NCBI GenBank assembly: GCA_977030845.1
Contig: OZ365116.1
Location: 17,794,001 to 17,858,000 of the forward strand
Direction: 5' to 3'
Source of the DNA: Fimbriosthenelais zetlandica
Taxonomy: Eukaryota
Length of the DNA stretch: 64,000 nt
Both the position numbers and the translations under genes were made by a program. Below are positions 1,456-58,684 of this stretch, piece by piece. The notes under the pieces were generated by a model. It was not told the origin of the DNA, searched no databases, and saw only the letters and a list, made by a program, of their open reading frames with translations. How positions within the stretch are numbered: position 1 is the stretch's first letter; each line of letters starts with the position of its first letter.

Positions 1456-1741
1456 CAATCCAATGAGCACATCACAACCATAAAGGTACCCCACCATGAT
1501 AAAAAGAAAATCCCTAGAATCCAAGAGGAAATGTAAAAAGAGAATGTAAAATCGTGAAATTATAATTACTTAATCAGGCAGAAAGATAAAGACGACGCGA
1601 GTAATCAAGACAATGACATTCATCCATGGAGAACCAAGAGAGATTTATCATAAGTGTTTGACTATTGCTCGTTTTCTCCCGTGATACCTGTCCACCTTGG
1701 ACACGAGCTTTATGTAAGGATCCATTGTATGTATTATGTGC

Positions 1742-2959
1742 TTACAGTCCATATGTATCAGGCAGACAGAGGCACTTCTCCACGCCCTTCAGACAGTAGC
1801 CTCCCAAGAAATTGGCGCATTTCATCCCGGGGCAGCAAGGGTCCCCGTAAGGGTCGCAGCCATTTCCTTGATAGCGACACTGAAATCAAGAAAAAATATC
1901 TTTACTGAAAAAAACACGAGTATACAGACCAAAGTACCACATATCATGGTCACCAATGCATATCAATAGGGCTAAGACCAGTATTTCTTTTTCTAATTTC
2001 CCCCCTTCCTTCCATCCTTTACATTTATCTTTCATTTTCCCCTTCTCTCTTTATCTCTTCTTCACTCCTGTACTCTCTTCCTCCCATTCTATCTCACTCT
2101 CAGTTCATTGTCACAGATGAAGCTCTACTGTGCCAGTAAATGAGCAGTAATATTAACATGGTCAGCTGGGCCAGGTATAAGATCATGTGTATTAGTGTGC
2201 TATGGCAGAGCTGGATCGTGAGTGGAATAATTTTCCCCTGGGCCTAAACATACAATAAGCGGGAAGAGGGGTAGGTAAGGGCACTGGGTGCTAAACTGGT
2301 TTTATATGATGTGCAGGCACTGTAAAAACTATAGCGCAATTTCCTGATCCAGTGCAATACAAGTAATACAGTGCAATACCAGCAATACAGTATTAATAGT
2401 ATAAATATCACCATGATGGCCGGGAAGAACTATCTCACACATCTTTATATATAGAAATAGTGGGTGAATCCACGAGGTTGAAGTTGCCCGCTCTGTGTCG
2501 GACTAGAGCAGGTCATGAGCTTGTCCAATCTGTACAGCCGAGCTGCTCTGTCTGCTCCTAATACTGACACGTGGTGGGATGAATGCGGACAATGTGGCAT
2601 GCCTCAAGTCTATCACTTATACCTTCCTACTAAATGACTCATCATCCCCATATCCCTCAATGTACAACTGTCTTACCTCACCTAATAATTGTCCATTGTA
2701 GGTTAACCCATTGCCTACCACCTCCATACCCATTATTTCACATTTATACTTATATCCATTTTACGCAGTGAGGCATGATGTGACCCCCAGTGCTATGAAC
2801 AGTTAAATTGATCACCTTGAGACCAAATGAACGTTTGATAAGGTCCTGCTGTTGCTGTTGTTGTTGAAGTTGTGCAGGTATGTTCCTGGCTCGGCAGGCC
2901 TGATGTGATAGGAGCAGGAGAAGTGAGAAAGCCATCAACATGTTCACCTTGGCAGACAT
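1742..2959 (-). CDS. Secreted cysteine-knot (ICK/knottin; agatoxin- or agouti-like framework) peptide precursor, 93 aa; coding exons 2959-2816 and 1879-1742
   Basis: Exon 2959-2816 (preceded by acceptor CTCTTTTAG|atcATG; donor AAG|GTGATC) encodes MSAKVNMLMAFSLLLLLSHQACRARNIPAQLQQQQQQQDLIKRSFGLK. It joins in phase 0 via acceptor TTTTCTTGATTTCAG to exon 1879-1742, CRYQGNGCDPYGDPCCPGMKCANFLGGYCLKGVEKCLCLPDTYGL*. Hydrophobic signal peptide, dibasic KR, 8 Cys spaced C-x6-C-x6-CC-x4-C-x7-C-x6-C-x-C. Minus-strand AATAAA at 1455-1450 and 1422-1417. Confidence 0.85.
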
Positions 2960-3289
2960 GATCTAAAAGAGAAAACAACAAATATAGATACACGATTATA
3001 AATTATATATAATTTATATGTAATTAAAGGCCTCACATACAGCCTTAATTCTCGAGAATATACAGAACTTATAGATTATTCATGGTATCATTGATTTAAA
3101 ACTCCTCCTGCAGCCACCATGCATGTCTTCAGCATCCCCTATTGAGCTATGACAGAAGCAATTAGTCTATCTATAAGAAAACAGGAAGGGCCTCAGTTAC
3201 AGACAGATGTTGTGGGGCTACGCAATTTGCGTGGAAGAATGCGAGCAGAGGAGAAAGATGTCAGACAGACATTGACAAGGTCTTCCATG

Positions 3290-3303
3290 GTTATCATGGC
3301 AAC
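3290..3303. promoter_or_regulatory. RFX X-box-like element upstream of the first coding exon of the knottin gene
   Basis: GTTATCATGGCAAC (reverse complement GTTGCCATGATAAC), one mismatch from the X-box consensus GTNRCC-N0-3-RGYAAC; about 330 bp upstream of the ATG. Confidence 0.4.
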
Positions 3304-26200: not shown

Positions 26201-29200
26201 ATTTCCACTTGAACATGCTAGATCTTTCTCCATGTATTATAGTTACAAGTAGTTTTGTCCGTGGTTCATATGACTTATATGATACACCCGTCCTGTGTGT
26301 GCAGATGTTTTGATGCAATGTTATACACGTCAAATAGTCGTGGGTTCAAGGAAAAAGAAGAAATGTAATTAAAGCAATTGACAATGCCAGGTATGGTTTC
26401 ATGCACATGTACAAGTGCGTGGCGGTGGTGGAGTTAATACATTGTTACCGTAATATTAACATGTCGGTGTGCGCTGTATAATGTTTTCTGGACACGGGAT
26501 GTGTATTGGGTGGTATAGAAGAGCCGGCTCAGGTTGTCGGCAGCCGACTCCGCCCGCTGACAATCGGCAGGAAGGAGAGGCTGCCGCTCGCTGTTTGCCC
26601 GGGCGTCAGTTGCACTCCCCATAAACACCTCTGTCCTCACCTTTAATGAAAATTCTCCCCTCTTATAATGTCAGACCACACAAGGGGCTACCATCCCCAT
26701 CTCACACACGAAACACACCATCTGCAACTCCCCAATCCTACATCTTTACCCATTTATTATTTGTCGTCCCTCTAAACATTGTATTTCTTTAAATATGTAT
26801 CGATACAATGTCACATATCCAGTATTTTCTGTACAAGCATAGATTTGATACAATGATTTTACCCTGGTGAGTCAGATGTGCCTACTATGGCACCTGGGAC
26901 GAGGGTAGAAGGCGGGAACTGTTACAAAGCAGTTTTAATTAGCTTTTAAAGAGGAGAGCAGAGTTGCTTATTGTGTTTGCTCGGCGGCTTTGTGAGTATT
27001 GGTGTCGATATAGCTCTCTGTCTTTTCGGTAGGGACAAGGTTTTTGCTGGGCTTGATGGTAGGAGATGGGGAGGGGGGTGAACGTGAGAAACGTCAGGTG
27101 CATTGGTTGCGGGGTTAGAGGGTGGGGGGAGGGGTGTTCACTGTGTCAGGTTACCAAAATGTAAAGGGGTGGGCACAGAAAAAGACGTGGCACGAGTTCC
27201 CCATCACCTAATCCCCCCGATACATATATCTTATTTTTTCCCAGTCCCTCAACACCCACTGCCCCACCCACCCCCGATCACTCCCCCATCAGTGTCCTAT
27301 CATAATCATATCAGCTAATACAGGCCCGTCCATTGTAACATTCTACAACCCTCTCATTTGTCTCTCGTACAAAGGGAAGCCATTTATCATCTTTTTGCAG
27401 CAGTCTTTTCGGTCTCACGCTCTTCTTTTGTTACTATATGAAATAAGTTTAAGTAGTCCAAAGCTTGTAACAAGGTGGTACATGGCATGCCAAGTTTAGT
27501 AAGAAGATATTCATGAGAGGCTTTAAACAAAACCTATGTACATCTCTTACTTAGAAACATATGAGAGATCTGCCATTACAGCTCACTGTGGCTGTTGGGT
27601 GTGAATTACCCGTCTTTTATATCTCTCACTTGTGACAAAACAGTTGAGAACACGGCGCTGATTAGCCCTGTCACCTGTTTGTCGTCACAAGCCTTATGTG
27701 GTGTCAAAAAGCACCAATTAGATGGTCAGTCGTCCATTACTCCTACACCCAGCCATGTAATGTAAACCCCACATTGTGTAATACCAACCCACCAGGCATC
27801 CTCACCCAAAAAAGGCCCTATGGCCGAGGGACATGAGTTGACACTTTACAGGGCTTTCTTACCCTCATTGTCCCTCGCCAATTGCCCTTCAGGTAAAAAG
27901 GGCCATTGAGTGAGGGCTTTTCGATGGTACACGCACGACCTACCCCTGGGTTTCCAGTGGCACCGGGTGAAAAGTTGTACAAAGGAGGTATGACCCGAGG
28001 TCTCTCACTCCAACATGGAGAGAGTTCCCTATTAGAAAGCTCCAATATTGCCAATAGAGAAGAATACAGGTTTGAAAAAACAGCCTGGCGCGTGGATACA
28101 AATAAGGTCCTGACCTGGTGGTGCCGGGGTTAGATTAAATTATATAGATGGGTGAAGGGTGTGAGAAGAGGAGCGTGCGCTGCCAGAAGGCCAGTCCTGG
28201 CTGGACAATAGGATGAGAGGCTTATTATAATGTATAGACCAACAACATGTGTCTGTGGCAGGAGGAGGGGCTGAACCAATATAACTCCCTGGCTGAAATT
28301 ACAATACACACTCATTTCATCATTATAATGGACATGGCTTGCTTGTCTCAATATGGAAAATATTAAACATTGTAGGAATCATGTGTAATAGAGACCTTCC
28401 AGGTCGCTTGTGTATTTATTTTTCCCCATGTATATAAACGTTTTGGGATATAGTCATTGCTGTTTGATGTTGGGTGTTCCCTTTACACGTGGCATTTTGT
28501 ATTGTACTTACCCCGTCTCTTTGTATCAAACACTAATTTTATATGTGTGTTCTATATCTACCACCAAGTGTTTAAAAATAAATTTTAACATTATGTTAAG
28601 TACCTTACTCTAATAGTTAAGTTGGTTGAGGTAGAGTTCAAAGGGATATAAATATTCTGCGGAAAGACGGCAACAATTCAACAAGAAACAGAGCATGTGG
28701 TGATTATCCAAGTGAATTAAGAATTCTGGGACTTAGTGAGTGGATGCAGTTTATGCATGGTTCACTTTAGGTGTCAGTCACTCAAGTATGTGACCCACTT
28801 GATGTGCTATTTATATAATCGGGCCGGGTAGAGCCGGGTAGAGGCAATGCCTGTACCATTGTAGGAATGTGAGCACCGCTGGTGTAGTGGTATCATGCAA
28901 GATTCCCATTCTTGCGACCCGGGTTCGATTCCCGGGCGGTGCAAAAGTGTTTTTTTTTTTGTTTTTTTTACTAGAATCGCACCTGAGCGATCTCCCAAAA
29001 ATGTTATTGCATTCTATATCAAGTGTTTTTATCAATTAGAAAATTTAGTGTACACGATACAGAAATCAGAGTCTGTAATGATAGGTTCATTTGTTCAATG
29101 TGTTTAACTGCTGTTGATGTTATTGTTCATTTACTGAGATATTAACTATCTGTTACTTATTGACTTCAGGCTGAGCCAGCACCACCAGCTCAGGAGCAGA

Positions 29201-55800: not shown

Positions 55801-58684
55801 ATATACAACAGAATATAACAGATGTTCACATGTTTGAAAATTATTCACTTCTTGTCTAGAAACCTTTAGATTTTAAGACCTTAGATATAATGATTTAACC
55901 ATGTAGTATAATTTGATGTTTTACCTTTCTCCAGGCCCGGCTGTGTGGAGGGACTCTGGTTGTAGAGGGGGAGACGAGTCCTCGGTGGTTGGCTTATATC
56001 CAGGCTGCCCGGGACCGCCACGAACAAACACTAGAGGCCTTCAGAGACCCCAGAGGCTTCATCTTCTACAGGTGAGTCTACAATTTAAGAAAGATGTCAT
56101 TAATAAATTATACATATGAAATACCGAATTAAAATTACAGAGAGAAATTGTCTCTGAATTAAAGTGTCACTTGGATAACTATCACTGTCAGAATAAGGGA
56201 ATTTATTTTATATTTTCACTTTTCAGATCTGTGAGACCACTGCGGGCAGGAGAGGAGCTATTAGTTTGGTACGGTGATGAACTCGCCAGAGAGTGTGGTA
56301 TCCCAGTCCTCACTCCTACACATATTAGAGGTAAGTTAAGCACTTATAATGTTACAATAATTTTGATCACTGTTATTCCCTGTTGATTATATAATATTAC
56401 CCTGAGTTTATGGTCATTTCTTGGGTTAGTGCCCTCGCTTGGACGTTCTTGGTCATTTCATTGGCCAGTACCCTCACTTGGACGTTCTTGGCCATTTCTT
56501 GGGTCAGTGCCCTAGCTTGGACGTTCTTGACCATTTCTGGGGTTAGTGCCCTCCCTGGCCCAACTATAGCACCTTTCATCAGACCTCAATTTGTCATCAC
56601 CCACCATGAGAATGTGTGATGTTCATGCAATGATAAATAGCATGTCATCAAGGATATGACTGATCATAGCATGACATGTTTCAAACCAGGACCTCATGTG
56701 GCATTCTCACATACACATGCAATCCTGGAGAGTAAGACGATATGATCCTCTTAATATAGTTGCGGTGCATACCGCAGATACGGTCTGTCTCTAGGCTAAC
56801 ACACACCTGAGTTGTCCCCCTACCTTGTATTTACTCTGGGAGAATAGGATGTCTTGGATGTTTTCACTTGTCATTATACTGTATATTAGCACAAAGCCCT
56901 GACAGATCTTGATACATTCAGTTGTGCATTCATGTGAAAATACTTTGCCCGTTTGTTGCGTGGTTCTGTCATTCCCAACAACTGAGTATACAGTTGGTGT
57001 TTGCATACAGCCATGTCCCAGGGGTGAGGTGCCTTCAATTGGGCATAAATTAAGTAAGCTCACCAGGGTCTTATTTGCCGAGGGATTGGGGGAAAATGGT
57101 ATTTCTGTAGTGATTTTTTCCAAATAATTTTTGACCTAATATATTATTAAGTATGGGATTGCCTGTAAACCATCGAGCCAGCATAAACTGGGGATATGGG
57201 TGTATCCTCTTATTGAGGATCCAATATTGTTCTGTATGATTTTTCATATATCTATGATGTTTGATTTTTCAGGGGATCAACAATATGTTTGCAACACGTG
57301 CAGCAAGTCTTACAAGCATCCCAACTGCCTCAAAGCCCACATGAGGTTCCACTGTTCAGCTCCAACAAGACTTGACCTTTTGGTTTCAGCAAGATCAACA
57401 GATCCATGGTTACAGCTGACTCCAAGTCCCCCTAGACATAGCCTGGATGTCCTCAGGTCTCCAGAGAGGCCTTCAATCTCCCCACCCTCCACCACATCCT
57501 GTCCCTCTGGTCCAGTCAACCTCAAGATAGGCGAGGGGTCTGCTTTCAAACCTCCAAAGAGGGAACCAGAAACAATGAGACAGTCGCCTGACAGCACAAG
57601 AGATCTGCCTGACACCATGCAAGAAAGGAAAACAGAGGCGTGTATCAAAGAGGAGATTCCCACTACCACAACAGAGAAAAGATTTGAGGTGCCATCCCCT
57701 TCAAAGGCCGTCAGTCTGAAAGATGTCGCCTCAAAGTTCCCAGCAAGAACAGGAATGTCGGCAAGCGTCCCACAGCCCTTTCACATTTTCAACCATATTC
57801 ATCCACCTCACTTCCCAATGCCCATGGACAATCACACTGCTCTGAAGTATTACTATGCACCTTATTATAACAAGGTCCATGGGAATGGCACTAGTCAGTT
57901 ATGCTATAGCAGAATGCTAAAGCAGTCTGCCTTCCCAAATGGTTATCTTCACGGTCCAAACCCCTATTTTCCATTTGCTGGTCAGAAAATACACTCTACC
58001 CCGAACAGGGAGAATACAAATATGAGTGAAGCAGTGAAAACTTCTCCCCATCACAACATGGAGGCTTCACCTGATAGTGCTTGCCTACCCTTTGCATTTC
58101 CTCTTCCATCAGAGAAAGCAGGCGAGCCTCTCGACCTCCTCCCTCGCTCCCTCTACATGCATAAATCCAGGAAGGGTCATCTGTGTATATACTGTGGTAA
58201 ACTCTACTCCCGAAAATATGGCCTCAAGATTCACCTTCGGACTCATACAGGTTACAAACCATTGAAATGTAAAGTTTGCCTGCGTCCATTTGGTGATCCA
58301 AGTAACCTGAACAAGCACATTCGGCTGCACGCTGAGGGAGACACCCCCTACAGATGTGACTATTGCGGCAAGGTTCTGGTGAGGAGGAGGGACCTTGAGC
58401 GACACATTAAATCTAGACACCCCAACGAAGCTGCTAAACTTGGAGCAGCTGATTCAGAAGTGAGCAGTTCAGGGAAGCAGAGTGATCTGGATGGAAGTGC
58501 TTCACCTGAGCTTGAACATAACGCCCTGTCATCAGGAGAATCTGTCGGCTCGCCGACATCTTTCTCTGACAGTAAAGATTATATTGATGTCGACGATGAC
58601 ATGGAAGACGATGATGAGAGAGACGAGGAAGACGATGATGATGACGAAGATATTGATGTCACAGAAATAGAGGTCGTGGCATAA
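46882..58684 (+). CDS. PRDM13: PR/SET domain zinc finger protein 13, 691 aa; exons 46882-47304, 55935-56071, 56227-56330, 57273-58684
   Basis: PR domain ...DVPASITVGP...RWLAYIQAARDRHEQTLEAF...IFYRSVRPLRAGEELLVWYG, directly followed by ZF1 (YVCNTCSKSYKHPNCLKAHMRFHC). Three C-terminal fingers HLCIYCGKLYSRKYGLKIHLRTHTGYKPLKCKVCLRPFGDPSNLNKHIRLHAEGDTPYRCDYCGKVLVRRRDLERHIKSRHP are nearly identical to vertebrate PRDM13 as recalled. Four exons, GT-AG, phases 0,2,1. Confidence 0.95.
56411..56553. repeat. 39-bp minisatellite (~3.7 copies) in PRDM13 intron 3
   Basis: Unit TGGTCATTTCTTGGGTTAGTGCCCTCGCTTGGACGTTCT at 56411, 56450, 56489 and partial at 56528. Confidence 0.92.

Follow-up and report, generated by a model that had tools for sequence, protein, structure and literature searches.

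The minus strand of the 64-kb stretch of Fimbriosthenelais zetlandica DNA analyzed here (the window) carries, between positions 2959 and 1742, a two-exon gene that is very probably orthologous to CLCCY, a proneuropeptide gene of lophotrochozoans, and the product of which would be processed and secreted as a neuropeptide or hormone. It agrees with CLCCY in its similarity to the type member, in the Cys framework, in the layout of the precursor and in the phase-0 intron before the codon of the first Cys (Cys1). Coding exon 1 (2959–2816, minus strand), determined by direct reading of the sequence (minus strand of 1500–3300), by its translation and by alignment with Platynereis CLCCY, consists of 48 codons, from the ATG at 2959–2957 to a final AAG. 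It encodes a predicted signal peptide (residues 1–24; 2959–2888, minus strand), a glutamine-rich propeptide that is not conserved in the alignment with Platynereis (residues 25–41; 2887–2837, minus strand), a dibasic KR (residues 42–43; 2836–2831, minus strand) and the first five residues of the mature peptide. The signal peptide, as read from the translation, has a basic n-region, an 11-residue hydrophobic core and small residues at −3 and −1; its cleavage is predicted near residue 24, the exact point being uncertain by 1–3 residues. Within the propeptide, the glutamine run (2878–2846, minus strand) is encoded by a low-complexity CAA/CAG repeat that is not kept in relatives and the length of which may differ among individuals.

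Exon 1 is directly followed by a donor GT at 2815–2814 (reading GTGATC). The intron (2815–1880, minus strand; 936 nt, GT..AG) ends with a pyrimidine-rich tract and the acceptor AG at 1881–1880, and the 2816/1879 junction is in frame and of phase 0. Exon 2 (1879–1742, minus strand) opens with TGT at 1879 and comprises 45 codons and a TAA stop (1744–1742). The spliced product is a 93-residue prepropeptide with no stops or frameshifts, all eight Cys of which lie in exon 2, at exon positions 1, 8, 15, 16, 21, 29, 36, and 38; assignment of this exon to the 8-Cys domain rests on its translation, the family alignment, Pfam, and AlphaFold. Counted from the translation, acidic and basic residues of the mature peptide are about equal in number, so the peptide is near neutral. 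Its C-terminus reads YGL-stop, without a basic residue and without an amidation signal. Two AATAAA polyadenylation-like signals, recognized by consensus match only, lie 286 and 319 nt past the stop codon (1455–1417, minus strand). A hidden prepropeptide gene composed of these two exons had been proposed in the first-pass annotation; we found it in frame, intact and homologous to Platynereis CLCCY, and the 50-residue peptide quoted there, its Cys spacing and the lack of a C-terminal amidation signal were exactly as claimed. It had also been stated that exon 2 is absent from the open reading frame (ORF) track, and indeed no ORF in the list for the window ends at 1742. The exon is missing from that list because an in-frame TGA stands two codons upstream of the Cys1 codon and the first start codon of this frame is internal.

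To identify relatives, we searched the exon-2 peptide exhaustively with HMMER against 1.84 billion representative proteins and obtained 12 homologues. A word-indexed protein search with the same 45-aa exon gave no match, and the family was recovered only by the exhaustive search. The top match was the CLCCY neuropeptide precursor of Platynereis dumerilii (AHB62377.1; KF515938), with 64% identity over 45 aa and an E-value of 3.7e-13. The other matches came from Ridgeia piscesae, Capitella teleta (two genes) and metagenome contigs. One of the Capitella proteins (ELU03629.1) is also present in the original 2013 CLCCY alignment, and one metagenome ORF is nearly identical to an Alvinella EST of that alignment. 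The joined precursor aligned end to end with the 92-residue Platynereis CLCCY (residues 4–93 vs. 6–92; 42% over 92 columns; pairwise E 2.6e-28), and the collinearity of the two species thus extends to the signal peptide, the propeptide, and the basic site. The two precursors (93 vs. 92 aa) have the same order of elements, i.e., signal peptide, short propeptide, KR, and a single Cys-rich peptide, with identical spacing of the eight Cys and a Y-G-hydrophobic end lacking an amidation signal. They differ in the propeptide, which in the window gene is built of the glutamine run and is unrelated in sequence, and in the distance from KR to Cys1, which is three residues in Platynereis and five in the window gene.

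An alignment of the window peptide with its 12 homologues gave the framework C-x6-C-x6-CC-x4-C-x7-C-x6-C-x-C. The eight Cys are invariant in all 13 sequences, together with Q4, M19, and E34, while P10, N23, and G32 are nearly invariant; the window peptide carries all six of these non-Cys residues. Orthologues without the Cys framework, named beforehand as evidence that would count against the gene, thus did not appear. The seven-residue spacing between C5 and C6, which had been considered unusual, is conserved throughout the alignment and is therefore part of the family framework, a hallmark of CLCCY rather than an oddity of this gene. The CLCCY sequences given in the supplementary files of PMC8557429 do not include the window peptide. 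A basic residue stands just before Cys1 in six of the nine sequences for which the upstream residue is genuine; Lys at this place is common in the family and might serve as a second, monobasic cleavage site. Two C-terminal subgroups could be recognized: Platynereis, Ridgeia, the Alvinella-like ORF, and the window peptide end in Y-G, and both Capitella genes and the homologue P0129 have a longer tail with R-x-G-R/N. In several relatives a G followed by K or R near the C-terminus forms a possible amidation signal, absent from the window and Platynereis peptides.

The joining of the two exons is justified by the introns that relatives share. At both Capitella loci (P0128/L003 and P0132/L004) a phase-0 intron lies immediately 5′ of the Cys1 codon, as in the window gene, and in the annotation of Ridgeia (L002) the intron, also of phase 0, is placed three codons further upstream. 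Two metagenome loci (L005, L006) have a pyrimidine tract and an acceptor-like cag abutting the Cys1 codon. A second shared signal was found at the other end of the coding region. In Ridgeia, at both Capitella loci and in the window, a pyrimidine tract and an AG precede the ATG of the signal peptide by 0–5 nt; in the window this likely splice acceptor is at 2964–2963 (minus strand), 3 nt 5′ of the start codon. Such a tract and AG just before the start codon imply an upstream non-coding exon, and on these signals the CLCCY family, the window gene included, probably has a non-coding 5′ exon. In the Capitella gene models (L003, 6001–6180; L004, 6001–6063) an annotated first coding exon precedes the exon that opens with ATG and the signal peptide. 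By this annotation the N-termini are extended by 60 and 21 residues, probably through 5′UTR sequence being called as coding.

Since exon 2 lacks its own start codon, it could be suspected that the model is a chance combination of ORFs or a dead pseudogene. We assign next to no probability to this. The similarity to a named orthologue and the full-length collinearity described above speak against it, as does the fact that all residues invariant in the family are intact, without stops or frameshifts. The splice signals are canonical and common to relatives. Moreover, a six-frame search of the window for the strict 8-Cys pattern gave a single occurrence, and none of 100 shuffles contained it.

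Elsewhere in the window (~41% G+C, no N), a PRDM13-like gene was observed at 55923–58684 (plus strand), with PR/SET-domain exons at ~55923–56066 and ~56219–56335 and a large last exon at ~57263–58684 (plus strand) that encodes C2H2 zinc fingers and an acidic tail. Its best full-length matches were nemertean and molluscan (cephalopod) proteins with 44–47% identity, and the zinc-finger part was 60–87% identical to annelid proteins. These matches place the genome among the lophotrochozoans, probably in an annelid. A tRNA-Gly gene (anticodon CCC; 28873–28943, plus strand; 61 bits with the Rfam tRNA model) was the sole Rfam/ARAGORN match.

CLCCY was named as a lophotrochozoan proneuropeptide family in 2013 by Conzelmann et al. 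(PMC3890597). Therefore, the suggestion that the peptide may represent an undescribed family does not hold: at 64% identity to the Platynereis member, it is CLCCY. Mass spectrometry (MS) in that study revealed a 19-residue propeptide of Platynereis that reaches from the signal-cleavage site up to KR (PMC3890597, supplementary file 9), and its N-terminus fixes the site of signal-peptide removal in this species. The detected propeptide stops exactly at KR, and by this analogy the KR of the window gene, already noticed in the first-pass annotation, is a putative prohormone-convertase site. Stage-resolved expression values are also listed for Platynereis CLCCY, and in 3-day larvae an in situ signal was reported in a survey of proneuropeptide expression (PMC5747525). 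CLCCY-like contigs are annotated in an earthworm nerve-cord transcriptome (PMC5688751), and the family was later found across Lophotrochozoa, including molluscs, brachiopods, and phoronids (PMC6425005, PMC8557429, PMC8398477). The label neuropeptide is based on the precursor architecture and on the expression in Platynereis and earthworm. By analogy with these relatives, the window gene most likely encodes a processed, secreted neuropeptide or hormone. In the accessible text of the papers that name CLCCY, we found no report of its receptor, function, or structure, and no mention of its fold or of a link to toxins; a review of toxins that mimic neuropeptides contains no pair resembling CLCCY.

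We also compared the peptide with other Cys-rich signaling peptides. The CCWamide/agatoxin-like peptide (ALP) family (U8-agatoxin) likewise consists of protostome peptides with eight Cys, a short precursor, a Cys peptide encoded in the last exon, and a probable knottin-type fold. The Cys domains of the two also start in common, with C-x6-C, then D-P and an aromatic residue, as might be expected if the window gene were a divergent paralogue within that family. In CCWamide/ALP, however, C6 and C7 enclose an aromatic residue, the C-terminus is aromatic and amidated, and the basic site is interrupted by a phase-2 intron, and it is these features that define the family (Thiel et al., 2021; PMC8557429). 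None of these three features is present in the window gene: its C6–C7 loop, LKGVEK, has no aromatic residue, the peptide ends in YGL-stop, and the intron is of phase 0 and lies five residues past KR. In addition, the gap between C5 and C6 is seven residues instead of one. A profile comparison with the Platynereis CCWamide peptide in hhalign reached a probability of only 13.7% and did not bring the Cys into register, and the papers mentioning both CLCCY and CCWamide handle them as separate families. We thus rejected membership in CCWamide/ALP and regard a divergent paralogue within that family as very improbable, although a deep paralogy of the two families is conceivable.

The AgRP/ASIP peptides resemble the window peptide in the start of the Cys pattern, C-x6-C-x6-CC, and weakly in fold, ASIP being found at rank 32 of the Foldseek matches. 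The AgRP/ASIP (Agouti) framework has 10 Cys. As the window peptide has eight and gave no match to Pfam Agouti even at E ≤ 10, it was rejected as a member of this family. The loop that had been matched at first reading to the RFF-bearing loop of AgRP reads LKGVEK in the window peptide; this and the missing Agouti match bear out the earlier view that the peptide is not a typical melanocortin antagonist.

To characterize the 8-Cys domain further, we scanned it with Pfam models and modeled its structure. The exon-2 peptide reached 21.7 bits with Toxin_12, marginally above the cut-off of 21, and the match covers only residues 1–29, i.e., the first six Cys. With the Conotoxin model (PF02950), which we take to represent O-superfamily conotoxin precursors, exon 2 scored 13.5 bits, below the cut-off of 25.1, and exon 1 gave no match (the exons were scanned separately). 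The Platynereis orthologue exceeded the Conotoxin cut-off (28.2 vs. 25.1). Among nine family members, five matched Conotoxin and four Toxin_12 at E < 1. The pLDDT of the AlphaFold2 prediction was 70.7 when the single sequence was used and 85.0 when the family alignment was supplied, and the model contains a beta-hairpin of residues 19–22 and 37–40. In a Foldseek comparison with the PDB, most matches, the best one included, were inhibitor cystine knot (ICK) peptides (mu-agatoxin, double-knot toxin, remipede Xt3a, agelenin, psalmotoxin, tachystatins, and asteropsins) with TM values of 0.5–0.75. Every E-value was ≥ 0.5, as is usual for so small a domain, and a few IGFBP, colipase, Dickkopf, and cellulose-binding-module entries appeared at lower ranks. 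Sequence searches of the PDB, whether by the peptide or by the family profile, returned only non-significant ICK toxins of spiders and remipedes, solved toxins having E ≥ 0.07. Taken together, the Pfam scores, the AlphaFold model, and the Foldseek matches make a knottin-like fold of the CLCCY domain plausible, in line with the 8-Cys knottin-like peptide proposed at first reading.

These matches raise the question of whether the peptide is an ICK toxin, used in venom or for defense to block the ion channels of prey or predators, and not an endogenous signal. Among PDB sequences and folds, it comes closest to toxins of spiders, remipedes, and sea anemones, and the Toxin_12 score barely over the cut-off and the Conotoxin matches in five of nine family members point the same way. 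On the other hand, we found no second copy, paralogue, or further knottin exon within the 64-kb window. Toxin families are usually expanded and fast-evolving. The window gene is single-copy in this stretch, and non-Cys residues of the family are invariant across lineages that include the non-venomous Capitella and Ridgeia. The in situ signal in Platynereis larvae (PMC5747525) and the CLCCY-like transcripts of the earthworm nerve cord (PMC5688751) also argue for an endogenous peptide. We therefore consider a toxin improbable, with a small residual chance.

We also compared the peptide with the six-Cys ICK toxins, i.e., Toxin_12 of the huwentoxin type and Conotoxin. The first six Cys of the window peptide, C-x6-C-x6-CC-x4-C-x7-C, fit both models. 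Unlike these toxins, it adds two Cys (C-x-C) in a conserved C-terminal extension, and CLCCY is a conserved, endogenous gene, single-copy within the window, for which larvae of a non-venomous annelid relative gave an in situ signal. It is conceivable, though rather unlikely in our estimate, that CLCCY peptides are endogenous neuropeptides with an ICK fold and that their six-Cys core is homologous to that of conotoxin- and huwentoxin-type toxins. If so, CLCCY would be the native lophotrochozoan signal from which such toxins arose or which they imitate, and CLCCY peptides might act directly on an ion channel and not on a GPCR.

The presence of tachystatins A and B and of Alo-3 among the weak Foldseek and phmmer matches could be taken to indicate a secreted antimicrobial or immune knottin of the tachystatin or Alo-3 type. 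Antimicrobial peptides are commonly of a cationic type, but the mature window peptide is near neutral. The matches in question were also no better than those to neurotoxins. Weak expression of oyster CLCCY in visceral ganglia (PMC8398477) would agree with such a role, whereas the precursor is of the prohormone type and its processing at KR was confirmed in Platynereis (PMC3890597). An antimicrobial function thus appears highly improbable, and the CLCCY neuropeptide or hormone is retained as the preferred interpretation.

In the course of events that we propose for this neuropeptide or hormone, the signal peptide would be removed near residue 24 and the C-terminal domain would fold oxidatively into a mini-protein of knottin-like shape held by four disulfides. 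Cleavage at KR by a prohormone convertase would then give the glutamine-rich propeptide and a non-amidated peptide of ~50 residues. The mature peptide would be stored and then released by neurosecretory cells through regulated secretion, and would signal as a neuropeptide or hormone via a receptor, either a GPCR or an ion channel.

The gene is one more CLCCY orthologue, probably unannotated, for an orphan neuropeptide family and does not found a class of molecules of its own. It illustrates that, in genome annotation, short peptide genes with two exons slip past ORF-based tracks. To the description of CLCCY, our analysis adds the prediction of a knottin-like domain, a conserved phase-0 intron before Cys1, probably also an intron in the 5′UTR, and the observation that CLCCY lacks the tested defining features of CCWamide/ALP.
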